Origin: Neoechinorhynchus agilis
Lineage: Eukaryota; Animalia; Acanthocephala
Direction: 5' to 3'
NCBI GenBank assembly: GCA_051530055.1
Contig: JBMGUZ010000063.1
Location: 1 to 15,721 of the forward strand
DNA: 15,721 nt
Numbering within the stretch: the first letter of the stretch is position 1; every line of letters begins with the position of its first letter. Shown here piece by piece: positions 18-15,721 of this stretch. The notes beneath the pieces are model-generated. The model was not told the DNA's origin. It did no database searches and saw only the letters and a program-made list of their open reading frames with translations. The translations under genes were made by a program, and so were the position numbers.

Positions 18-3000
18 TTTTTTTTTAAACGCATATTTTTTTTGAGTAAACAAAACTATTCTCGAAATTACTTTTCTTTACATTCACCACCTCCCACCAA
101 ATTCCAGCTTTTGTCCTTCCTCGACCGTCGCCATCACGCTGGCAGCATTGCCCCGTTGTACTGCCAGCGAGATATTTTGTCGAAGAAATAAGCCTGCTCT
201 TGAGTCTCCGGTTGCCTCTCTCAATTTCTTCGAGAGATCCTTGAGCAGAGAGAGTGCCGAGCTGCCGAGCGCTCCATACGTCTCTACCCCAAAGGGGACA
301 AAATAGTGAGCCCTCGATAGCTGAATATATTTTCGTACCTTCCTCCCTTCCGCTGCACTGGCGGCACCACCGGCGATTTCGAGGGAGTAGGGGATGTTGC
401 TGGCTGCGAGGGTGTCCACACACGTGGCGTCCCAGAGGAGGCATTTGCCCTCCCGCCACGGGAAGACCGAAATTCCATCGGGCCTACGGCCGTCTAGTCT
501 GCAGAGGTGGGCGGGTTCCAGGATGTTCGGGAAGTTCGCCGTTCTCAACGCCCGAGAAATTACGTTATTGATTTCAGAATGGCGTGAAAACCTTCCTGCT
601 GACCTTCTGCAGACGAGACCGTGTCGCCCGAAAGCATCAACCAAAGACCCACATCGACAGCGATGGGGCGTGCATATCGGGAGACCGAGTCTTGAGGATA
701 CTGCGATCCTCGTCACCTCGTCAGTAAGAAGAGTTCCCACAGATGCCAGAGGAACAGCCTCCAACCACGCCCCAGATTCTCGTGTTGAAACTGCCAACAG
801 TCTAGCTCGGACGACCCCATCGCGAGAACCTGAAAGAAGAGGCTGTGAGCTCTCGCGACAAGAGGTCCGTCCCAGATCGACTGTCTGAGGCCATTCACGG
901 GAACTTGGTTAGCGCCTGTCTGCTGGCACCATTCCTCAACCGCCACCACGAAATCCTGGTCAAGACAAAACTTTTCTTTCAAAATGTTATTCGAGACTGG
1001 TAGGCTCCCCTCAAACGATCCAAGAAAGGCCGGCAAAGCAAGGTCGACTAGTGCCCGAATTCCCAATCCCCCAGATGACACAGGCAAAGAAGCTTGTCGC
1101 CACGCCTCATCTGAGAGCTGGACATTTAAAATACGCTCGAGACAAGCCCTCACCTTATCGTCCAGCTTTGCCAATCCTTTTTGTGTTTGGAGAATGTTGC
1201 TGTGCGAACCTTGTACAATAATTTGGGAATGAAGAGCGCGTTCTTTATGAGAAACAAGGCTTCGTGAGCCGAGAGAGCGCTCACCCTATCGCCCAGCAGC
1301 GAAAGTTTCGGTATGATACGGCCGATCTCATCTTCCACATTTGAATCGAAGACGCAACTGCCCAGGAGGCTGAGTTGTTCCCGAGTCACGAGTTTCGGGC
1401 CTGGAGCTACGGCCTCGAACCCAGCCATTAGTTCCTTGACTTTGGCGGGGTCTCCAATATTCAATACAAGGAGCTCACATTTTCCAGCATTGAGCTCAAT
1501 GCCCATCTTCGAGGTCTCCCTAATCAGCGTCTCCAAATCGCGCAGTACAACGGAGGGATCACCTCCGAGCGTAGCGTCATCCAAGTACCAAGCGTTGAAG
1601 CTGGAATGGAGAGAATGCGCTATTGGGTTTACTGTTAGGGAGAATCCGATTGGACCGAGGGGATCTCCTTGCTGCACTCCTCTTTCGGACCAAATGAGGT
1701 GGTCTTCGAAAAGCAAAGGAATCGCCGTCCCGTAGGCATTGAGAAAATACTGGAAGGCTTCTGGTGCGTGATCCCTAATTGCGCGGAACATGATTTCTCT
1801 ATTGAGAGAGTTAAAGGCGTTCCGAAAATCGCACTTAAGAATCACGCACGGCGCTGAGCTACTCGTAGCAAAGTTTCGGAGCGAGTGGACGATAGCTTCC
1901 GCCCCGCAGGATGTGCAGCAGCCCAGTTGGACTGGACGAAGTTGCTGCCCGGTTTTCTCTGTAATACGTTTGCAGAGAATTTTTCCTGTAAGTCGGCGTA
2001 TCGTCGAAGATACGGCGATTGGACGGATCCCACCTTCTTTTTTTGTGAGCGCACACAATGAGGCTCCGAAAAATAGGTCTTTTGCAACGGGGTTCAGGTC
2101 CTCTCCAGTCAGGCGGTCGACTATTCGAGAAAGCGCACTTCCTAGAGAGAGATCTGCTTCACCAGTTGAAAAGGACATCATGTCCTTTAAGTGCTGAGGC
2201 CTTAGTCCGTCAAGCCCGTGACCCGAACCATTTGCAAAAGTTGAGATGGCCTTTTTCATCTCTGAAATTTGAGTGGGCGTCCTGTCCTGAATGGGAGGAG
2301 ATGGAATTTCAAAGCTTCCGCTACTACATGGGTGCTTCGACCGGAGTATTTGTAGCGTCTCGCTGTCTCCTTTTGCGAAACTGTCGGAGGATGACAATAA
2401 CCGAACAGCCCCCCGAACATCCCCGTCCGCAAGCTTCGAAGAGACACGCTCAGTCAGTGATCGTTTTGAAAAACGGCAGCGATACTCTTCCTTCGTGCGT
2501 CCCTTAGAAACCTCGCGGAGATTCCTTTCGAAATTTTTAAATATTTGTTCAAAGGAATCTAACCTTTCCTTGATTGTTGATGTCAAAGACACCCCAGAAT
2601 CACCGCTGGTGCAAAGGACTAAGCGCGGGAATGCGAAGAGCCGTGTCCCTTGATGGCGCACAGTTCGTTTGCAGGCAATCGTTGAGCAATCCCGTAAATG
2701 CTTTGGCGACCTGATATCGTGCGCCCTTTGGGATCCGTTTCAGGACGTTCCTGGGCAGAAACCGCACGATATCAGGTATCGAAATAGAATCCGTGGTGAT
2801 CTGAGGGGTCTCAGGCACGAACGGTTCGGTTAATTGTGGTGGAGAACCAGACCCACTACAGCGGAGATCTCGGGGACCATGGACAAACAAAACCCCCAGA
2901 TTGGTTAATTTAAAAAACTTACCGCAAACCGGACACAAACCAGTAGAGACGCGTGGGAGCCCGGCAGCGTTGGTCTTCTCAGATTGCACGTGATCGATAA

Positions 3001-3046
3001 GTAGCTCGTTCAAATGAGTTTTTATGGCGGTACCATGTTGAAACAT
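18..3046 (-). mobile_element. CRE-clade non-LTR retrotransposon (N-terminal Zn finger, RT, restriction-like endonuclease). Single ~990-aa ORF broken by 3 frameshifts
   Basis: Four ORFs (2600-3046, 1150-2661, 713-1174, 84-797) join collinearly. Zn finger: CPVC..HGPRDLRCSGSG. RT motifs: GIRPIAV, DFRNAFNS, GVQQGDPLGP, WYLDD, LNAGKCEL. RLE motifs: CRCG..HGLVC, RHSEIN, RPDG, WDATCVD, E..K..KY, QRGNAASV. A-rich tail on the minus strand at 18-43. 5' boundary is uncertain (~3050-3140). Confidence 0.95.
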
Positions 3047-3190
3047 TTATTTCGCGGACGACTCTCGGATCCTCGAATCAAGTAAGCATTGCACATGAGT
3101 ATCTCGGCTCATCAAGTAAGATAAAAATTGAAATCGGTAAGCGTTAACTAGGAAAAATGACACAGACAAAAATCAAAGGTTAATATATCC

Positions 3191-4022
3191 TCAGCCAATT
3201 TCTTGTTCATGACTGTTGTGCCGATGACTAGGCGAATCGTGCTCGCTATTTTATCGTCGTCAAAGTTAAAAATTGCAACCCTTTTCGTTGTTTTTAAGAG
3301 AACTGTATCGACTTTAATGACACTTACGACTAATCGATCACTTTTTGTCTCGTTTATGATGTCGGATCTTTTTTGATTTCCTTATTGTTCTAAACAGTTT
3401 AGGCTTTCGCTTTAAAACTCGTTTGTCGTTTTTACTCAGTGCATCAATTGCTCTCAATGCATCCTTCGTACTTCTCATTTGAACAATTCTTCTAATATGT
3501 TTAAACAACAGAACTTCCCGACAACCAAATCACGACTAATGGCACCTTTTCGCATGGGTAACCCGTCCTTCTTCATTTTTTCGAGTAGTTCCATGTTGGA
3601 CATGTCACCGGACGACGGTCCTTGCTCATCACTAGAGTCCTTATCGGCCTGGCCTCGTTGTTGGCACTTTATGCATCGGACATCCCTAATTTGTATGCCA
3701 AACGGTTGGTCTTTTACTTTATCATTGGGTTTGGCCCATTGCTCACGTGGAGCTCCTCGCCACCGTCTTTTCCACCATCGTCGGCTGTCATACCAATCGG
3801 AGGATTGTACATGAATGAAAGTCCCAAACGACCTTTCTCATCACCCAGCAACCACCGATTCGCAAACATCTCCTTTTCCTTGTCATGCTGCTCTTTTAAA
3901 AGTTGCTGCTGTAGCCGTTCAGCTTCGGCCTTTTGCTCAGCCATCCAGAGGCGTTTCATGTTCCCCAAATTGCTGGGATGAAACCACTTCTTGGACATGT
4001 AATTCTCGTAGCCTTTCCCCAT
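3191..4022 (-). pseudogene. CIR1: CIR1 (corepressor interacting with RBPJ) homolog, disrupted
   Basis: MGKGYENYMSKKWFHPSNLGNMKRLWMAEQK..LGDEKGRLGLSFMYNPP matches the Cir_N region. After a frameshift near 3770: WRGAPREQWAK..DQPFGIQIRDVRCIKC..MKKDGLPMRKGAISRDL. After a second shift near 3500: ALSKNDKRVLKRK, then a K/S/H/R-rich tail with in-frame stops (first at 3340-3338). The 3' end is approximate. Confidence 0.88.
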
Positions 4023-4407
4023 GTCGAATCGAAGCTCTTAATAAAAAATCAATTAGAAATTCTTTAAATCTTGGTTTCAAAAAGAGCTCGTTACAGCACA
4101 CAAAAACAGCATGTCCATTTAAGAGCTGGCTTTCAAGTTCGATCGAAATCGGGGCCTTCGAGCAAGATTGGCCCGAGTTTGAGGCGCTACTTGAGTCTGA
4201 TAGGGGAAAATTTTAAAGAAAGTCTGATTTTAAAGAATTTTTCGACTTCTAAATGGATATTTGGAATCTTTTCTTGGGATTCGTTGATCAATTTACGAAA
4301 AAATAGCACCCTAATATCGCTTATTTCGATATGTGAGTGCATGTTATGTTTTTGGAGGAGAAAGGATGTCTTTGCGAGGGACAACATTTTAGAATCAAAG
4401 ATCGGAA

Positions 4408-5454
4408 ATGCCAAGTTCGACGGAATTGATCACTATATTGCTTTGTTCTCTTCTATTTGTTTATCTTCTCTTCAAAGTCTTCTCAAATGTGAGGTTGCTC
4501 AGTTCGTGCGGTCGAACATGCTTAATAATTGGACCGAGTGGCAGTGGAAAGACAAAGCTTTTTCTCGTGCTGAATGATCAGACAGCAAGATCTTCGGTGA
4601 CTTCACTGACCGCGAATGTCTCGGAGTATTCAGAATTGGTTCAATTAGTCGATCTACCTTCTCATCCTCGTTTGTGGAACAAAAGTCGAACCTCGATTAA
4701 GTCTTATGACATTGGAAAAATTATTATGGTAATAAAACCCTTCGAAGATTCAGCAGGACTTTCCAAACATGAACATTTCCTACATGCTGCTGAGTTATTT
4801 CGGGATACTCTTTCGGAAATAAGCCACCGCCAAGATCCACTAGGACATGGATATTGCCATTCGTAGTAAAATCTTCATCGTTTTAGAAAAAGAACACAAA
4901 TTCGGTCTGAGAAAAATCGAAGGCGAAAGTTACGATCCCATTGGATTTAGGGATCATCGTTTTTTAATTCGAATGTATACTTTGACTTTGGTTAACGAAC
5001 TCTGCCAAAAACAACTCACATATTTTTAGGTTATAATATTGAGGTCGGCCCTCCAGTTCTGACAGGGAAGTCAAATTTTATCGTTATCAGATCTAAAAAA
5101 AGAGTACTTTTAATTGGTAATCACTGATAACGATTTTTGTAAGGTTTCGAGGGCCGACTGCAAAATAATAACATATCTAACCGCCCGCCTACTTTTTATG
5201 AATGTGCAAAAATTCATGTCGCAAAATTGCCTGCTCTCGTAGTGTGGAATGATTGGCGCGAGGACGCTAAACAATTATTCGAAAACGGAAGGAGTGAATT
5301 AAACAAGCAAATTGTTGATACTGTGAGTAAATGCGAGGAAATACGTTCGAGTAGTTCAGTGGAGCAGTACGTGGAATCGTTTAATTGGCTAAAAGGCGAT
5401 TTAAGTAAAGATGAATTCGTAAAAGAGGTCGGTGATTGGATTAAACAAAGCTAA
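4408..5454 (+). CDS. SRPRB: SRP receptor beta subunit, two exons (4408-4815 and 5200-5454, ~220 aa) separated by a non-GT-AG interruption. Functional status unclear
   Basis: N-terminal TM helix, G1 [16 protein letters not shown] (usually DxPGH), [14 protein letters not shown]. Homology resumes at [17 protein letters not shown] and ends EVGDWIKQS*. No stop or frameshift in the joined frame. Confidence 0.8.
5044..5158. repeat. Nested inverted repeats / stem-loop element inside the SRPRB interruption
   Basis: GTCGGCCCTC (5044-5053) pairs with GAGGGCCGAC (5149-5158). ATCGTTATCAG (5080-5090) pairs with CTGATAACGAT (5124-5134). Small internal hairpins TGAC-agggaa-GTCA and AAAAG-agta-CTTTT. Confidence 0.8.
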
Positions 5455-5899
5455 TTTTTGAGTTGAGTTTTTGGACTTTACGTTCTCATCTTCCCATTAT
5501 AACGGAGGAATATTCGATAATGGAGAAGATATTGGAGAATCAAGTGGTTTTAGTATGCGGAGAAACGGGATCCGGCAAGACTACTCAACTCAGTTTTTAT
5601 ACGAATACGGATTCACACAAATAGTTTCCCAGCACAGAATAACCCAAGTCGTTATTTTGGTACAATGGAGCGATTGCCTCCTTTATTAAAAATCTCGAAT
5701 ACAGTACGGTTTCAGGGCTTCTAAAATTCAATAGGGTGTAGTGCCATGCGAACAGTAGAGGACCGAAAGGATAATCCTTCTGAACAATTTCTCGAGAGGC
5801 CGCCAAATATCAAGTCATTGTCGTCAAACATCGCGACGAATGGTAATAAGCTCGGAATATATATTTGCCATTCTTAAATTAATATTTGGCGCAACTAAA

Positions 5900-6566: not shown

Positions 6567-7570
6567 TAAAAGCTCCTCGAATATCATTAACAATATTTTA
6601 TCCTTGGTCAATCGTCTCTTAAACATGGGTAAAATCAGCGATGATTGATAATATCAGCCGCCATTTATTTTCTTCAGCAATTTTTCAAGCAGTCCCTTGT
6701 GCCGAATATTTAATTGATTCGAACGAACTTGACTTAGGATGTTGACCAAATTGTTATTCCGAATTTCACTCAGCGCTATTTCACGTTCAATCATCGCGCT
6801 GAGTATCCGCTTTAGCATCGCGTGGTTCCGAACTGTGAACTTCTCGTCCAAGATGCTTTTTAAACGATCGCAGAGTTCCTTGATGCTCAAGTTCATTTCA
6901 ATTGAAGGCTTTGATTTTCTTTTTGAAATCGATTCATTCAGTGATTTGTCCTTCAATTGTGACCCTGATTTATTTTCGATCGAAATATTGGACATTTCCG
7001 TAGGTTGCCGATTGTAGATTCCCACCATCTTTTTTCCGATTTTATCGATTATGTCGATTAACGGTTCGTTTTCCCCGTTGCTGGCCATCTTATGGAGAAT
7101 ATTTATAAGATCGGAATCTTTGATTTCATCCACAGTCATCTCTAATTCTGAAATCTCGGAAAGGACATCGTCCACCAGTTCTAGGCTTTTGGTTGCGTAT
7201 TGCGAATCCAATAAAAACTTTAGTAATTTAATCTTCTTGGTTAAACGAGAAGGCGGCATCAATTGTTTGGATTCTGAAATCTGTTGACTGTGAACGTTTT
7301 CGACATTGTGAAGTCCCGTTTCTATTCCTCCATCGCTATTGATTCTCTTCGGCGATTCTGTTCTCTTTTCCGAAATTGCGTTGGAATCTCGATCACTAGA
7401 ATCAGTAAGTGATATTTCGGGTTCTACTTCTATCGGTTTGTTTAATTTGGGTTTTGTCGCTGGTCTTTCTTTAGATCGTTTTTGATTGAAAGCCTCCTTG
7501 ACCTTCATAGCAACTTGGATTAAGAGTTTCTTGAGTGGAGCATTATCCTTGTTGTCGAGCATCTCTCCAA
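6567..7570 (-). repeat. Inverted segmental duplicate of 14718-15721
   Basis: Paired coordinates sum to 22288 at both ends, so there is no net indel. By eye about 18 substitutions (~98% identity). The copy may extend past the window edge. Confidence 0.97.
6654..7562 (-). CDS. 5'-truncated 302-aa paralog of the TFIIS-N-like repeat protein (end of repeat 3, repeats 4-5)
   Basis: Open 302-codon frame with 7 amino-acid differences from 14726-15634. Identity stops abruptly 8 bp upstream of the ATG. Expression unknown. Confidence 0.6.
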   Translation of the reverse strand: MLDNKDNAPLKKLLIQVAMKVKEAFNQKRSKERPATKPKLNKPIEVEPEISLTDSSDRDSNAISEKRTESPKRINSDGGIETGLHNVENVHSQQISESKQLMPPSRLTKKIKLLKFLLDSQYATKSLELVDDVLSEISELEMTVDEIKDSDLINILHKMASNGENEPLIDIIDKIGKKMVGIYNRQPTEMSNISIENKSGSQLKDKSLNESISKRKSKPSIEMNLSIKELCDRLKSILDEKFTVRNHAMLKRILSAMIEREIALSEIRNNNLVNILSQVRSNQLNIRHKGLLEKLLKKINGG

Positions 7571-8921
7571 AAGTATTTGCGTTCTTTTCCAGCCCTTCAC
7601 TACGAATTTAACGCTTCTTTAATTGTTCAAAATTTCAGCTCTTGCTACACTGTTCAATAATACGCCTGACAAAATTCTCTTCACCATAAAGTTTAATTAT
7701 TAGATGCTTTGATTATATGAAAATCAACACCATTAAAGGTTAGCGATCAAAATAAATTTCTATCACTATGCTCACAAGTCTTATTGTTCCCCAAAGCACC
7801 CTGAAGTAGTCATTGTTACAAATTAGATCAATCGACTTAGCATCCTTTGTTTCTCAGAATTGTCAGTAGAAAGATTCCGTTATTGAAAGAAGAAGCTAAA
7901 CTCTGGTCGTTTTCCATTAGGGACATCTTGTGTACTAAACAACGTGGACTCCACCTTCACATACCTACAAATGTTCAGACGGCGGGATTAAAAAGAACCA
8001 AATTTTTGATAAAAATAATTTATGTAAAATGGCTGAAAAGGGTCTCCATCAAAGTTCAATTTAAACAAAAAATTTACATAGTTTATCATTAAAAGTTTTA
8101 AAAAAGGGGATCCATAGTTCTGGAGGTCTACCGCGCGCAAAGAAGCACAATGATTCTCCTACAATACTTTTGAGTGCACGGACGAGGGTTGGGAAAGGAA
8201 CCAGGAGATGCCTTGAGAGCTTGATAATAGATTTAATTTTACAGAATGTACTCTTCAGAGAAGTATTAATAAAAATTCGGTTTTGTGTAGAAGGGAAGTC
8301 AATTCCCAGCACACGAGAGTGCTTTTTGAAACCAAAACACGAACTTAAATCACCCTTTCGTGCAAACCAATGAACATTTCTCCGGTTTCAATTAGATTTG
8401 TCTTTTGAGTGAGAAGTCAACGCTCGTGGCTATTTTAAAGTACGAACTAAAAACTTACCATGAAGTTATCGACGAGATCTACAAGGTTCTCAATTGTGTT
8501 GAAGCAAAACCCGTCGGTGGTGGAGACGGCAAGAGCGATCTCAACCGAGCGCAAAATCCGTTTAAATTAATGGCGGAAACTATTCACTGATTTTATTTTT
8601 TGTATTGTCTCTGATTGGTTAAATTCCAGCGAAAGAGCGACGACAAATGAAACTTGAAAATTAAATGAAAGATTCCTGGGAATATTTCTTAGCAAAAAAA
8701 ACCCGATTTCCAGTATGAACGAGAACCTATTTAAAATAAGGGGAATTATATTTTTAAATTATAGTACACCCTTTTATTTAGTACGGCAATCACGTCGATA
8801 ATATCAATCTTAAAATATTTTCTTTTACCAAAAAACCAAGAAAAGAAAAGCACACAAAAGTTATAAAATTTGTAGGGTATGTGGAGATTGAACTATTCAT
8901 GTTTTTTTGCTTAAATTTAAA

Positions 8922-8999: not shown

Positions 9000-9545
9000 A
9001 CTTTACACCGTACTTTGATTCATTCCCCGGTCCACTGTTTCAACCTGGCGAATAAATAAGACTCCCATTCAGAGCGATCCAATTTGAATTCACCTCGGGC
9101 CATCACGTGACCTTGTTGATCAAAATGGTGGCGTTATCGCAGAACTGAATCGATTCCCCTCCTCAGAGCGCATATTTGTCTTCTTTGGTTCTTTTTTTCC
9201 AAATTATTTGTTTGGCCTACATAGGATTTATTCCATTCGACGCAGGGAATCTCGTACACTTTGCTTTCATGCTCATCTCGTTTCTTAACCATGGAGCTTA
9301 ATTCTCGAGCTTTCTTCGATCTTTAGGCGCAACTTCCTTTATCAGATTGTTAATTGCACTGAATAACTCATCATCGACGAATGGTGAACCTATGGAGGTC
9401 CTTCGATTGGGCTCCCGGCACACTGCTTTCCTTCCATGAAGCCATTTTTATCATAGAGATTGGATAGCCCTTTCCTTTGAGCATATTGCTAACTCATTAT
9501 TGAGGGAATCTTGGTTGGAATTCAATTCCCTAGTCGGCGTTTGCA
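9000..9545 (-). mobile_element. Penelope-like element thumb/linker plus GIY-YIG endonuclease fragment, degenerate
   Basis: SNQDSLNNEL / MLKGKGYPISMIK (9469-9461 = GYP), KVYEIPCVEWNKSYVGQT (9262-9209), RTKEDKYAL*, HHFDQQGH. Multiple frameshifts and stops. Confidence 0.85.
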
Positions 9546-9607
9546 TTATTCTTACATAATTAACAGCGAAAGGACATTGGCGTTATCGGTCTCAATATCA
9601 CGCGGAT

Positions 9608-9694
9608 TCTTTATTTCCTAACAGTCTCTTGCTTTATTCTTGTACCGAATACGTTTTGGATTTTCTAACTCAATGGAATTTTCGATTTCAATTC
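9608..9694. repeat. Dispersed, diverged ~87-bp copy of the 170-bp tandem repeat unit
   Basis: TATTTCCTAACAGTCTCTTGC..CTTGTACCGAATACGTTTTGGATTTTCTAACTCAATGGAATTT is shared with the 10513-11110 units in the same orientation. Confidence 0.9.
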
Positions 9695-9744
9695 TATAGA
9701 TTTTCTGAATTCGAACACGCAAAGCGAAGGTGCACTTTTGATTT

Positions 9745-10485
9745 TCAGGAGTAATCGAGTGAGGCCGTGACTTTTGTTAGTATTGTCATTTTGGTTGTTG
9801 GTTCAATGACAGTAAAAGTTGGTTCATCGTAGATTGCTTTCATATAAGCAAGCAAATCTTCATCACAAACCGATTCAAATCAATGTTTCTTCAGAATACC
9901 TTTATTCTCCCAATTTACGACACTATGTGGATTATGGCAGTTCGGGCCGAATCGGCAACTATTGCTTGCCACAAAATAAAAACAAGCATGAACCTTCTGG
10001 CACTCTTTATCCATCACAAAACCGTCACACAATCTAAGCATACGACCAGTCTCGAAATCCGTTATAAATAAGATCTTTTTGAGGGTTCGGATTTTTACTT
10101 TATCGGCACCATGGAACTTTGCTGCCTGGAGATTGTGTTCCGACTTGAGATCGTGGTCAAATGCACATTTTCGGCCTTTTGTAGAGCTTCCTTTGAGAGT
10201 TGTTAAAAAGTATTTACATCCATGAATATATTTGCAATCCTCATTGCGTGATGGTTAAAACCTACATCTCATGATTTTTGTATTCAAAGCCAGAATGAAT
10301 TTTGTGTTGTTTTCGTCCGACAATAAACTTAGAAATCGGTGAGTTAAACTGAGTTTGTACATATCGAGGAGCATTGTTGAAGGATCAACGTCCGAAGGAG
10401 TGAGATTCGCGACACTAATTTCAGTTTGCCTTGTTTCCACCAATTTGTCAATAAAGGCATCAATAAAGGCTTCAGGACTCTCCAT
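9745..10485 (-). pseudogene. ZAP (ZC3HAV1)/PARP12-like N-terminal four-CCCH zinc-finger domain, with two in-frame stops
   Basis: One 247-codon frame: MESPEAFIDAFIDKL..HRFLSL..RCRF*PSRNEDCKYIHGCKYF..KCAFDHDLKSEHNL..KFHG..LRLCDG..CQKVHACFYFVASNSCRFGPNCHNPHSV..ILKKH*FE. TAA at 10257-10255, TGA at 9882-9880. Layout matches the ZAP/PARP12 N-terminal domain. No WWE or PARP domain seen. Confidence 0.8.
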
Positions 10486-10512
10486 TATAAGTTGAAATTG
10501 TTAGTTTTTTAA

Positions 10513-11110
10513 CGCCATCGAACCAAATCTTCTGATATTTCTCTATTTCCTAACAGTCTCTTGCGTGATTCCTGTACCGAATACGTTTTGGATTTTCCAA
10601 CTCAATGGAATTTACTTTAGATTTCACCTACCAGTTGTAGTTTTTTTCTGATTCCTGCTCACTTGATTGCTATGGAACAATAGCGCCATCGAACCAAATC
10701 TTCTGATATTTCTCTATTTCCTAACAGTCTCTTGCGTGATTCCTGTACCGAATACGTTTTGGATTTTCCAACTCAATGGAATTTACTTTAGATTTCAATT
10801 CACTAGTTGGCTTTTTCTTGATTCCTGCTCACTTGATTGCTATGGAACAATAGCGCCATCGAACCAAATCTTCTGATATTTCTCTATTTCCTAACAGTCT
10901 CTTGCGTGATTCCTGTACCGAATACGTTTTGAATTTTCCAACTCAATGGAATTTACTTTAGATTTCAATTCACTAGTTGGCTTTTTCTTGATTCCTGCTC
11001 ACTTGATTGCTATGGAACAATAGCACCATCGAACCAAATCTTCTGATATTTCTCTATTTCCTAACAGTCTCTTGCGTGACTCTTGTACCGAATACGTGCG
11101 GGATTTTCTG
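10513..11110. repeat. Tandem repeat, ~3.5 units of 170-171 bp
   Basis: Unit starts (C[G/A]CCATCGAACCAAATC) at 10513, 10684, 10854 and 11024. Units 2 and 3 are nearly identical. The outer units are more diverged. Confidence 0.97.
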
Positions 11111-11439
11111 ACTTCATCAAGTTTTTTATTGCAAAGCTCAACATCCCAGCTCGCCGCCGGTGGAGGTCGTGAGTTCCTAGCGGTTTCTTCAACATCGCTA
11201 ATTGTCGTTCTTTGTCTTTGGCTTACAACCCTAACTTCAATGATATAAAATCGTAGCTTTAACAATCCTTTGTAAAGTCTGTTAGTTTCTTATTGATATC
11301 CTTCGACTTAATCAAATTTCGAACTGGTATTATCTGCCGAATTCATCCTCTAAGCAAAAAATCGGTTTGAAGTACTCGACCTTGTACCCATCGTTCCTGG
11401 GCCAAACGAGCACGGCGAATGGTACTCTTGTTGTTTGGT

Positions 11440-12149
11440 TGAATTCATTTTGTATGCTTCGGTTTATATTTTATTTACATCAGCTTGTCGTTAATGAACT
11501 GCAAGCCAAAATAAACTTTCTCTCATAATCCAATAATAGAGTACAGTGATTGCGACTGGAAGATAAACTGCCAAATAAAGATTCCGCCATCCTCTAACAA
11601 AATAAGCGACTAAATCCAACATCAACATTCCTATACCTCAAATGAAATTAGCCATTATACACGGGGTGCCTCGGTATTCTGCTGCAAAAACTTCAATCCT
11701 GAGAATATAACAAGAAAGTTCACCAATCTGCCGGCAAATTCCAAATAAAAAATGAATACTATAAAAAATATCAAGATGATTCCGATCAATAAACAAGATA
11801 TAATGATTTTAACTGAACGGATGCATCCGATTTAGATGGTGTTTGAAAGTGCACAGCCGATTCCGAATATGATATTGATCCAAGTCCCGAGAAGAGCAAT
11901 TGGATTCTTACCAAAGTTGTCGCCAAACATTGACAAAACGGCTGCCCCAATTACTGATCCTATGAAAAAGGCTGGCTGCGGAATATCCTTTAAGAATTTC
12001 CGATCGCAATATAGATCAAAAGTGAATACCAGCGATCTGTCGTCGGGAAGCGGGTGGATGTAGCCGTTAGGACAGGGAATTGTTTTATTTGACAGTGAAT
12101 AATAATTCTCAAACTTCCCATCTGCATTAATTGAAATCGCGTCGCTCAT
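11440..12149 (-). pseudogene. SLC22/organic cation transporter-like MFS pseudogene fragment (end of the large loop through TM2-TM6)
   Basis: CPNGY..SLVFTFDLYCDR..FFIGSVIGAAVLSMFGDNFGKNP; a probable 55-60 nt intron ending TTTTATAG at 11759; FLFGIC..IEVFAAEYRG..FI*GIG..AYFVRGWRNL..YYWIMRESLFWL. In-frame stops at 11834, 11640, 11493 and 11466. Confidence 0.85.
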
Positions 12150-12319
12150 CGGCCATCAAATTAATTTAAAAATTTCTATTCTACTTATATTTTTGAAAAT
12201 AGTAACGTTAAAGCTTTCAATATTTTATTTTTTAAATCTCTATCATTCAAAGCCTTGTGATCATTTTCTTCAATTCTTTTACTTTTTGCCTCAATTCTCG
12301 TTCTTATACAACTCAAATC

Positions 12320-12880
12320 CTCCATTAGTAAAGGACATTTATGTTCCGGCATTTGATATAAATCTAACGAATGAATTTCCCTTCGCTGTTTTGTGATTAC
12401 ATTGAGTGCCATTTAAACATTTATGGCATCATAGACGTATCTTCTTATATTCTTATAATCTGCCACCTTTTAAGCTATTCTCAAATCCACACCATGGAAA
12501 ATCCCCTGATTTTCATGATCGAAGTAGATTCCAACAAGTTAATCGGCGACTTCACTGTATGTTGTATTGCTTGGTGCTGATCATGCGTAGTCCGAATGTT
12601 TTTCTCGTGGTTTTGCAAGGTTCATTGCTTGATTCTGTTCTCGAGTAGAAATGACTGCTGATTCGGTTGAAGATGAAATGATTGAACGTTGTATTGAACG
12701 TGGCTTTTGATCGAATCGATGAGTACGAGTCCACTTCAGGATTGTGGTTCATTTGACCATTGAACGATTATGGCGGTTACGTTTTCCATTGTGCTTAAAT
12801 ACTTGGATTTGAAGATTCGAATCAGTAAGAGGAAATGTTGAGATCGTGAAAATAAAGATGGCTGAGTTTGGTGAAGATGT
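12320..12880 (-). pseudogene. Possible telomerase reverse transcriptase-like relic (heavily frameshifted)
   Basis: Exact FPWCG (12500-12486), then SLK/VADY, then KCPLLMEDL (12340) at 52 codons from the W. Weaker upstream matches: LYFHDLNISS.DS (12857), VISTREQNQA, SDYA*. No DD catalytic motif or GIPQG was found. Confidence 0.45.
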
Positions 12881-13073
12881 CTCTCAATAGTAAAAGAATG
12901 AAAACTTACATTGAAATCATTAAAGCATTTCTGATTCGCAGGATAAAGACTACTTTGTATTAATGCTGATTTTTTGACATTTTTATCCTTTTTTGCTTAG
13001 CGAAAAAATCTTAAAATTAGTCTATAGACAACATTTAATTGTTAATTGAGAAGCGATTTCCGCATCGATAACA

Positions 13074-13390
13074 TTTTGTTAAACATACTCATTTTTTTGA
13101 GACATCAAATCATTCACACAATCGCTCTGGATCCCTGAGATGCCGTTTTGGTGTAACGGTCGAAAGGACGGATGAAGCATTCCCTCTCGTTTTCAGAGCA
13201 GATTTTTGTAGGAGGAATGCTCCTGATCTCGGATCGCCAGTGATTCGTCTCAATCTCTTAGACAATTCCTAGACCAGGTCCTGGGCCGCAGTGAGCTCAC
13301 ACTTTCCAGCATTAAGCTTAACGCTTAATCTCGCATTCTCCCTAATCTTTCCTGATCTCTCGGTTCGGATATCAGCCTTATGGACGTCAA
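13074..13390 (-). mobile_element. Second, internally deleted CRE-clade retrotransposon remnant
   Basis: IRENARLSVKLNAGKCEL (13319-13293, nucleotide-similar to 1471-1497) is joined directly to the C-terminal ELSKRLRRITGDPRSGAFLLQKSALKTRGNASSVLSTV..* (stop at 13112-13110). A CTC-A7 tail follows. Confidence 0.85.
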
Positions 13391-13703
13391 GAAGGAAGTA
13401 AAATGATAATCAGACTCAAGATATAGACAAATAACTACCATACAAATGAAGATTCTTACTACGAACAATAAATCATTACTGGGCTGCTATTATTTTTGTC
13501 AGCTCTTCTTCAGTACTAATTTTGATTACTAATTCATCAAAACAATGAAAATAAAGCTTCCATTTCACGTTTGACAATATCTCAGATGTTTGTACATTTG
13601 AAAGACGCCAATTGAGGTCGAATTGACGTCGTTCAATTTCGGTGCAGTAAAACTAAAACCATACTTTAGTATTGTCTTTAAAGTGCAAGAGAACGAATCA
13701 AAA

Positions 13704-15634
13704 ATGACGATCAAGCGAACATCAAATGCTAAGGATAAATCACTCGCTCAAATATGTGATGAATTGAGAGATAATCTCGACGGTGATTCTTGTACAATCA
13801 ACCAATCTTTGGCCAAACGAAACCTGCGAGAATTGTTAACGCGATCGATTACAGCCGAAGAAATCTTAAACTTTGGGATGCTTGAGATGGTAGACGAAAT
13901 GGCCGTAGACAAAGATTGCAAAAGTACAAGTTGGTTCCTAAGTAAATTAAAGAGCAAATTCAAAAAGATTGTCGGCGAAAAATATTGTCCAAGGATGAAA
14001 ACGACGAAGCATTGGTCAGTACGACCTCAACTCGAAAACGGGCAAATAAAGATGAAGTAATGGCGAAAAAGGAGATGACAGATTCAAGCGATAAAGGACG
14101 AATCCATTATGAAATGGCAACGTCCAAATCATTAAATATGCTAGTTAAAAAAGTTAAAATTGGATTGGACTCACAGTTTAAGGTTACAAACAAGAGCTTA
14201 GTAACCAGTGTCTTTTCTGAGATTCTCAAACAAGAAATGACCATCTCTCAGATTGGTAAGTCCGGCCTGATAAAGATTCTCCACCAAATGATTCAAAACA
14301 AAGAAAACGGAGAACTTGATTATTTGATTAAAGAAGTAGCAGCAAAAATTAAAGTAGTGCTCGGCATGGAGAAAGGTAAAAATGCCGATGATAAATCTCA
14401 TACGATGTCCGGTATCCACTCAAAGTTTGATGTTGAGATTGAAGAGCAGTGTCCGATAGAAACGAAATCTAAATCCAGTTTTGAAGACGCGAGCTGTAAA
14501 GAAATTTCAAGGAAGAGGCTGTCATCAACCATTCAAGGTGAAGAGAAAACAAAAATTCAGCGGACAGATTCAACACATCTCCGTCAAAGAATCTTGATGA
14601 CTATGAACTCTGAGCACAAAATTGTGAATTTTGATTTATTAAGGAGCATCGTTGATGAAATTCTGAAGGGCGAAGTTAGCCTGAGTGAAATTCGTCAATC
14701 CGGATTGATAGATGTCCTTGGAGAGATGCTCGACAACAAGGATAATGCTCCACTCAAGAAACTCTTAATCCAAGTTGCTATGAAGGTCAAGGAGGCTTTC
14801 AATCAAAAGCGATCTAAAGAAAGACCAGCGACCAAACCCAAATTGAATAAACCAAAAGAAGTAGAACCCGAAATATCAAATACTGATTCTAGTGATCGGG
14901 ATTCTAACGCAATTTCGGAAAAGAGAACAGAATCGCCGAAGAGAATCAATAGCGATGAAGAAATAGAAACGGGACTTCACAATGTCGAAAACGTTCACAG
15001 TCAACAGATTTCAGAATCCAAACAATTGATGCCGCCTTCTCGTTTAACCAAGAAGATTAAATTACTAAAGTTTTTATTGGATTCGCAATACGCAACCAAA
15101 AGCCTAGAACTGGTGGACGATGTCCTTTGCGAGATTTCAGAATTAGAGATGACTGTGGATGAAATCAAAGATTCCGATCTTATAAATATTCTCCATAAGA
15201 TGGCCAGCAACGGGGAAAACGAACCGTTAATCGACATAATCGATAAAATCGGAAAAAAGATGGTGGGAATCTATAATCGGCAACCTACGGAAATGTCCAA
15301 TATTTCGATCGAAAATAAATCAGGGTCACAATTGAAGGACAAACCACTCAATGAATCGATTTCAAAAAGAAAATCAAAGCCTTCAATTGAAATGAACTTG
15401 AGCATCAAGGAACTCTGCGATCGTTTAAAAAGCATCTTGGACGAGAAGTTCACAGTTCGGAACCACGCGATGCTAAAGCGGATACTCAGCGCGATGATTG
15501 AACGTGAAATAGCGCTGAGTGAAATTCGGAATAACAATTTGGTCAACATCCTAAGTCAAGTTCGTTCGAATCATTTAAATATTCGGCACAAGGGACTGCT
15601 TGAAAAATTGCTGAAGAAAATAAATGGCGGCTGA
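13704..15634 (+). CDS. ~640-aa intronless or near-intronless protein with five ~80-aa TFIIS N-terminal-domain-like helical repeats; one frame disruption near 13980
   Basis: ATG at 13704 in the 13623-14060 frame. The frame switches to 13985-15634 at the A5 run 13978-13982. Five repeats share the pattern L..IL..E[IM][ST]..EI..S.L..IL..M, separated by K/S/E-rich linkers. Confidence 0.75.
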
Positions 15635-15721
15635 TATTATCAATCATCGCTGATTTTACCCATGTTTAAGAGACGATTGACCAAGGATAAAATATTGTTC
15701 ATGATATTCAAGGAGCTTTTA
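14718..15721 (+). repeat. Partner of the inverted duplication at 6567-7570
   Basis: Reverse complement of 6567-7570. Runs to the window end. Confidence 0.97.

Follow-up and report, generated by a model that had tools for sequence, protein, structure and literature searches.

A multicopy gene encoding five MED26-like TFIIS N-terminal domains in the acanthocephalan Neoechinorhynchus agilis

The window analyzed here, i.e., the whole stretch of DNA under study, is the entire 15,721-nt contig C63 of the 46.2-Mb, 102-contig assembly of Neoechinorhynchus agilis, an acanthocephalan that parasitizes fish. It carries a copy of a gene whose product is built from five tandem TFIIS N-terminal domains (TNDs). 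The first in-frame ATG lies at position 13704 and is preceded by a conserved region (13457–13703, forward strand) that is common to even the most diverged full-length copies and that we regard as putative promoter and 5' UTR; the copies on contigs C3 and C1, with about 95% nucleotide identity, start to align at 13457. The coding sequence comes in two pieces, both on the forward strand. Its 5' part (13704–14009) is in frame 1, in a register identical to that of the intact copies elsewhere in the genome, and holds TND 1 (13722–13994), whereas the remainder (14010–15634), recognized by profile search and as an open reading frame, runs in the -1 frame to the stop codon at 15632–15634. A genome-wide profile search placed TND 2 at 14117–14383, TND 3 at 14552–14821, TND 4 at 15032–15295 and TND 5 at 15389–15625 (all forward strand). 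Repeat R1 is consequently read in the frame of the ATG at 13704, and repeats R2 to R5 in the -1 frame that ends at the stop codon.

Alignment with five other genomic copies puts the frame break between 14009 and 14010, where one base is missing, and thus about 30 nt away from the position near 13980 at which the earlier note had located it. An A-run at 13978–13984 was considered as the frameshift site and rejected, because all five aligned copies have the same run; the intact copies, such as the one behind the NCBI gene model P0001, read straight through the 14009/14010 point. Judged from this alignment, the window copy would be disabled by a 1-nt deletion, provided that the assembly is correct. 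Its two frame pieces were searched separately, whereas folding was done on the intact paralogue P0001. A 5'-truncated copy at C1:8104402 (locus C1:8102902-8107509) starts approximately 3 nt or less from the position of the window's deletion, and this common start may represent a shared breakpoint or repair junction.

A second, partial copy of the gene lies inverted at 6567–7616 (reverse strand). It was found as an inverted repeat of 1004 nt with 98% identity and as an ORF (6654–7562), and comprises the end of TND 3 together with TND 4 (6993–7256) and TND 5 (6663–6899). The TND gene itself is part of a segmental-duplication unit (9930–15721) that is 98.7% identical to a stretch of C1 and was also detected on C25 by blastn. 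Five 170-nt units, 66–100% identical to the reference copy, form a tandem array inside this 5.8-kb unit (window positions 9539–11151); the array likewise occurs on C1 and C25. The left part of the window contains a retroelement remnant with a 503-aa RVT_1 ORF (1150–2661, reverse strand; E 1e-18) and a 237-aa ORF (84–797, reverse strand). This remnant has a GC content of about 52% vs. 38% and lies outside of the TND duplication unit. A fragment of the gene for the SRP receptor beta subunit (SRPRB) is found at 4408–4866 (forward strand; E 3.6e-11), and the stretch from 3015 to 5477 is 99.6% identical to a stretch of C25. No part of the window resembles human sequence.

The five repeat cores quoted in the earlier note were all found exactly in the window. 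The corresponding units of approximately 85–88 aa align in one register without internal gaps, and pairs of them are 21–40% identical, with BLASTP E-values from 1e-18 (R2/R3) to 0.01 (R3/R5). Significant matches were obtained for R1 with R2 and R3, and for R5 with R4 and R3. From 36 such repeats we built the profile A1.

TNDs are right-handed five-helix bundles of about 80 residues (Pfam PF08711, PROSITE PS51319). The assignment of the repeats to this family, proposed in the earlier note, was upheld by profile-to-sequence, profile-to-profile and structural comparison. Against PDB sequences, A1 matched the N-terminal domain (NTD) of MED26 (5odd, E 2.9e-8; 6zv3, E 4.4e-8; 7emf chain Z, E 1.4e-6), and the alignment to the human MED26 NTD is gapless over residues 6–87, the full domain length. 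The TNDs of PPP1R10/PNUTS were weak further matches (PNUTS, E 0.22). A comparison of A1 with Pfam-positive Med26 domains by hhalign gave a probability of 96.1% (P 3e-9, 84 columns), while the column-reversed control alignment reached 0.7%. Outside of N. agilis, the only non-spurious matches of A1 among 1.84 billion protein representatives were proteins with a Pfam-called Med26 domain, among them one MED26-like model from a frog and two proteins of environmental origin; PPR/TPR proteins also appeared and were rejected as spurious helical-repeat matches. Pfam itself gave no hit on the TND ORFs of the window or on the whole intact paralogue. When PF08711 was applied to the 36 single repeats, one of them matched Med26 (E 0.056) and none reached the gathering score of 20.6 bits. 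We attribute these misses to the sensitivity of the model; the gathering score is not a structural criterion.

An AlphaFold2 model of R2, computed with A1, has five helices (residues 8–17, 28–40, 45–51, 53–61 and 64–91) with a pLDDT of 87.7 and a pTM of 0.77. It is thus a predicted five-helix bundle, and its top structural matches are TNDs. Foldseek ranked the MED26 TND 6zv3 first (probability 1.00, TM 0.69–0.70), followed by the LW domains of TFIIS, IWS1/Spn1, the integrase-binding domain (IBD) of LEDGF and the TNDs of PNUTS and Elongin A, with weak E-values (0.13) as are usual for small helical bundles. The all-against-representatives search with VIA-align superposed 89 of 92 residues on 6zv3 at a Z of 12.4; next came the yeast TFIIS LW domain (9.6) and the IBDs of LEDGF (9.5) and HRP2 (9.4). 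Since a Z of 12.4 falls within the range in which helical bundles can match through their arrangement alone, the fold call rests on the agreement with the sequence profiles; given that agreement, we consider the membership of the repeats in the TND family, derived from sequence and model, to be secure.

In the model of the full-length intact protein (678 aa) five bundles with a pLDDT of 70–86 are separated by linkers below 50 (residues 130–177, 260–323, 403–479 and 562–596), and the overall pTM is 0.24. The predicted architecture is therefore that of beads on a string, not of a solenoid, and no further domain is present in the model. This agrees with the statement of the earlier note that nothing else is recognizable: Pfam is blank, and the model consists of five bundles and low-confidence linkers only. 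The disordered linkers are charged and rich in serine, and carry the basic motifs STRKR and KRSK, which look like nuclear localization signals. A paralogue with four TNDs and only 35% identity is collinear and retains both the bundles and these short basic motifs.

The repeats depart from canonical TNDs at several positions (MED26 numbering, transferred through the gapless alignment to A1). The conserved Trp of the LW motif, reported as absent in the earlier note, is indeed replaced throughout: the column of MED26 W80 is hydrophobic in all 36 repeats, with Ile (13), Phe (7), Val (6), Leu (6) or Met (4). The preceding position 79, in helix 5, is Lys in 33 repeats and Arg in the other 3. N63 and N66 are conserved near the loop between helices 4 and 5, so that the family loop reads M-x-x-N-x-x-N. 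The equivalents of MED26 R61 and K62 are not basic; these columns hold Ala, Ile, Leu or Asn and Asn, Ser or Gln, respectively. The change of R61/K62 to alanine abolishes binding of the SEC by MED26 (PMC13634412). Because both the LW Trp and this pair are replaced, the canonical mode of recognizing TND-interacting motifs (TIMs) may have changed or disappeared. As R61/K62 gave way to the M-x-x-N-x-x-N loop and a Lys in helix 5, the repeats probably have ligands other than those typical of MED26. The loss of this pair argues for an altered binding specificity. In addition, the net charges of the five domains are +3, -1, 0, -5 and +7.

The window copy belongs to a large family. Nine other loci have uninterrupted frames of 676–677 codons with 90–99% protein identity; their product, if counted from the first ATG, has 643 aa. 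The 678 aa of the NCBI gene model P0001 result from an upstream extension that requires a 13-nt "intron" and is doubtful. Other copies have lost part of the gene or contain stops, and more distant paralogues comprise four, three, two or one TND. Altogether, the A1 profile detected at least 150 TND instances in the genome, which is a lower bound obtained with 150 of 224 candidates scored. In the library of 1.84 billion representatives, all hits with an E-value of 1e-11 or better but one are "hypothetical proteins" of N. agilis. The single exception is a 2,076-aa abalone protein, for which the match is confined to a short, repeated piece of the profile. Within the reach of the databases, the family is thus both lineage-specific and locally duplicated, as the earlier note had suggested. 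One of the paralogues is the 904-aa protein P0009 (L023:1922-4633, reverse strand), whose charged low-complexity region holds about eight tandem repeats, each approximately 85 aa long, and is followed by a single TND at residues 698–784. A paper on the N. agilis transcriptome (PMC12690905) does not mention these genes.

The intact paralogues are under purifying selection, which is strongest in the TNDs. Their dN/dS (Nei-Gojobori) is 0.34–0.45 overall, but 0.16–0.28 in the TNDs and 0.57–1.2 in the linkers; the pairs compared are not phylogenetically independent and dS reaches up to 0.12, while the lower value of the TNDs was present in every pair. In the repeat tree, R1, R3, R4 and R5 each group with the domain at the same position of the paralogues with four or three TNDs (support 90–96). 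This grouping indicates that the tandem array predates the recent amplification and that each position kept its identity.

How the family spread can be read from the arrangement of its copies, which often occur in inverted pairs; those of C1 and of the window are arranged likewise. On C3 (C3:2900001-2930000) a near-perfect palindrome has 6.0-kb arms with 99.0% identity, separated by a spacer of about 2–4 kb; the arms continue at 93%, after which about 2 kb of spacer is left. Each arm contains one intact five-TND gene, and this gene is its only long ORF, with no ORF for a reverse transcriptase (RT), integrase or transposase. The arms on C25 measure 5 kb and are 97.5% identical. The most diverged full-length copies, in turn, share only the gene and approximately 250 nt upstream, from 13457 onward. 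Since the copies are found in palindromic units and neither RT nor transposase travels with the gene, the family was spread by palindromic segmental duplication and not by transposition. A gene borne by a transposable element was considered and rejected: the RT of the window lies outside of the unit common to the diverged copies, and the palindrome arms are free of RT and transposase ORFs.

What could a protein made of five such domains do? No catalytic activity is known for TNDs. Those that have been characterized recognize short disordered TIMs, each made of a helix and an acidic stretch, and contact them with hydrophobic pockets as well as a basic patch (PMC9987994); the two pockets are shallow and flank the patch. 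If the repeats behave like these, each bundle would read a TIM-like motif of some other protein in the nucleus. With five bundles that differ in charge and are flexibly tethered, the protein would constitute a multivalent hub or, alternatively, a competitor that clusters or sequesters several partners at once. By analogy, we infer that the five-TND protein may act in the nucleus, either as a multivalent scaffold that gathers short disordered motifs or as a competitor for them. The genome encodes members of the partner families EAF and SPT6. The loss of MED7, MED8, MED10, MED19, MED20 and NELF was reported for acanthocephalans, N. agilis included (PMC12256650). Such losses from Mediator and of NELF make the expansion of a reader domain of the Mediator type notable, yet this is only a juxtaposition. 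On balance, we consider it probable, albeit with clear reservations, that the locus is a copy of a multicopy gene whose five MED26-like TNDs and disordered linkers form a multivalent hub or competitor.

Other explanations have to be weighed against this reading. Many HEAT/ARM proteins appeared at Z 7–9 in the structure search, and the TND has been likened to a HEAT-repeat pair (PMC9987994), which counts for a generic HEAT/ARM-like helical repeat that is TND-like only by arrangement. We find this hardly credible, as the profiles tie the repeats to MED26 TNDs in particular and do so across the whole length of the domain, and discrete bundles with 35–80 disordered residues between them do not form a continuous solenoid. 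Highly improbable, too, is a role as tether or decoy, in which the TNDs would mimic the IBD of LEDGF/HRP2 and guide or block the integration of the surrounding retroelements. Both IBDs are among the structural matches (Z 9.4–9.5), the RVT_1 ORF lies in the same window (1150–2661) and RT fragments occur near some copies. However, the sequence profile matches MED26 and not LEDGF, the duplicated unit is devoid of RT, the TND gene in the C3 arms is accompanied by neither an RT nor an integrase ORF, and no integrase was seen adjoining the TND gene. The contacts with integrase envisioned in the earlier note hence found no support. One might also envision a decaying family without function, in which recent segmental duplicates are becoming pseudogenes and open frames merely reflect their youth. 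The frameshift of the window copy, the several copies that are truncated or contain stops, and the surroundings rich in broken genes would fit such a scenario. In contrast, 643 codons are still open in copies whose proteins are about 10% apart and whose dS is about 0.11, and a dN/dS of 0.16–0.28 in the domains vs. 0.57–1.2 in the linkers is unexpected under neutral decay. Furthermore, the positional orthology with the 35%-identical four-TND paralogues implies that the architecture is old. We thus regard functionless decay as very unlikely.

A different matter is the cause of the amplification. Animal sex chromosomes carry palindrome-borne multicopy gene families, and the TND gene might be an ampliconic conflict or dosage gene as well. 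Here, an arms race in the germline, either through drive and its suppression or through the dosage of a transcription regulator in gametogenesis, would drive the palindrome amplification, and the TNDs would interfere with Pol II regulation in germ cells. The inverted pairs on C3, C25, C1 and the window are in line with this scenario, as are the TND gene as the sole long ORF of the C3 arm, the high copy number with many degraded copies beside intact ones, and linkers that evolve near neutrality. Nevertheless, selection on the TNDs is purifying and not positive, and palindromes can arise and persist neutrally via gene conversion. We therefore consider the scenario unlikely; it is compatible with the multivalent hub, because it concerns the question why the family was amplified. 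Bolder still, and in our view unlikely, is the combination of both ideas: in acanthocephalans, given their reported losses from Mediator and of NELF, a new class of poly-TND hubs built from a MED26-like domain would rewire or compete for the elongation-factor contacts of Pol II, while the palindrome amplification would reflect dosage or conflict in the germline.

Fold and family of the repeats are already known. In the literature that we searched, we found neither a protein consisting solely of five TNDs, nor a genome set of at least 150 TNDs, nor a palindromic amplification of TNDs. The human proteome holds about 15 TND proteins, and in the six characterized TND proteins the domain is a single module joined to other functional parts (PMC9987994). 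Here, a 46-Mb parasite genome contains at least 150 MED26-type TNDs, in arrays of two to five with nothing else attached. Pfam does not recognize this family, and its sole annotation is "hypothetical protein". Should the repeats resemble other TNDs in binding disordered motifs, they would represent natural multivalent readers. They would then make it possible to test in what way transcription-factor assemblies are shaped by TND valency, and might give a clue to Pol II regulation under a reduced set of Mediator and NELF components.

Among known systems, the closest is the MED26 NTD itself (5odd, 6zv3; PF08711), which has the same length and five-helix topology as the repeats and is their best match in sequence and structure. 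Both share a D20-type turn after helix 1, T44, the hydrophobic core and N66. MED26, however, has one N-terminal TND together with Med26_M and Med26_C, which dock to Mediator, while the five-TND protein P0001 has no hit to Med26_M or Med26_C; it is thus not a MED26 orthologue. A better candidate for the true orthologue, judged from its sequence, is the 582-aa protein P0012 (L019:2063-3808, forward strand) with a single TND and an R-K pair at columns 61–62. PDB sequence search, Pfam and ESM Atlas were all blank for its C-terminal part, and a search of the genome with Med26_C matched nothing, as did its control. The genome's TFIIS gene (L028:1357-2634, forward strand; C1:13399746-13401023), encoding 425 aa, is ordinary and separate; its product combines a TND with a central domain and a zinc ribbon. 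Nothing else in the genome matched Pfam Med26, and this match, at 18.4 bits, stayed below the cut-off. Several Med26 domains in one protein were seen elsewhere. The 537-aa P0021 from an environmental assembly has two Pfam Med26 domains and a Sina/TRAF-like domain, and the 942-aa MED26-like model P0015 of Rana temporaria has four, along with two Med26_M and two Med26_C stretches, a composition that probably reflects tandem MED26 duplicates fused into one model.

The TNDs of TFIIS, Elongin A, IWS1 and PPP1R10/PNUTS belong to the same fold family (Foldseek 0.94–0.99, VIA-align Z 7.2–9.6), but each of these proteins combines a single TND with further functional domains, and their sequence similarity to the repeats is weak. 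LEDGF/p75 and HRP2 likewise share the TND fold through their IBDs (Z 9.4–9.5), whereas the five-TND protein has no PWWP domain, no significant sequence match to them and no evidence for an FxGF-type use of the pocket. With IWS1, which combines three TIMs with one TND, it has multivalency in the TND:TIM network in common (PMC9987994). Unlike in IWS1, and in an arrangement that we did not find in the literature searched, the multivalency of the five-TND protein lies on the side of the reader.
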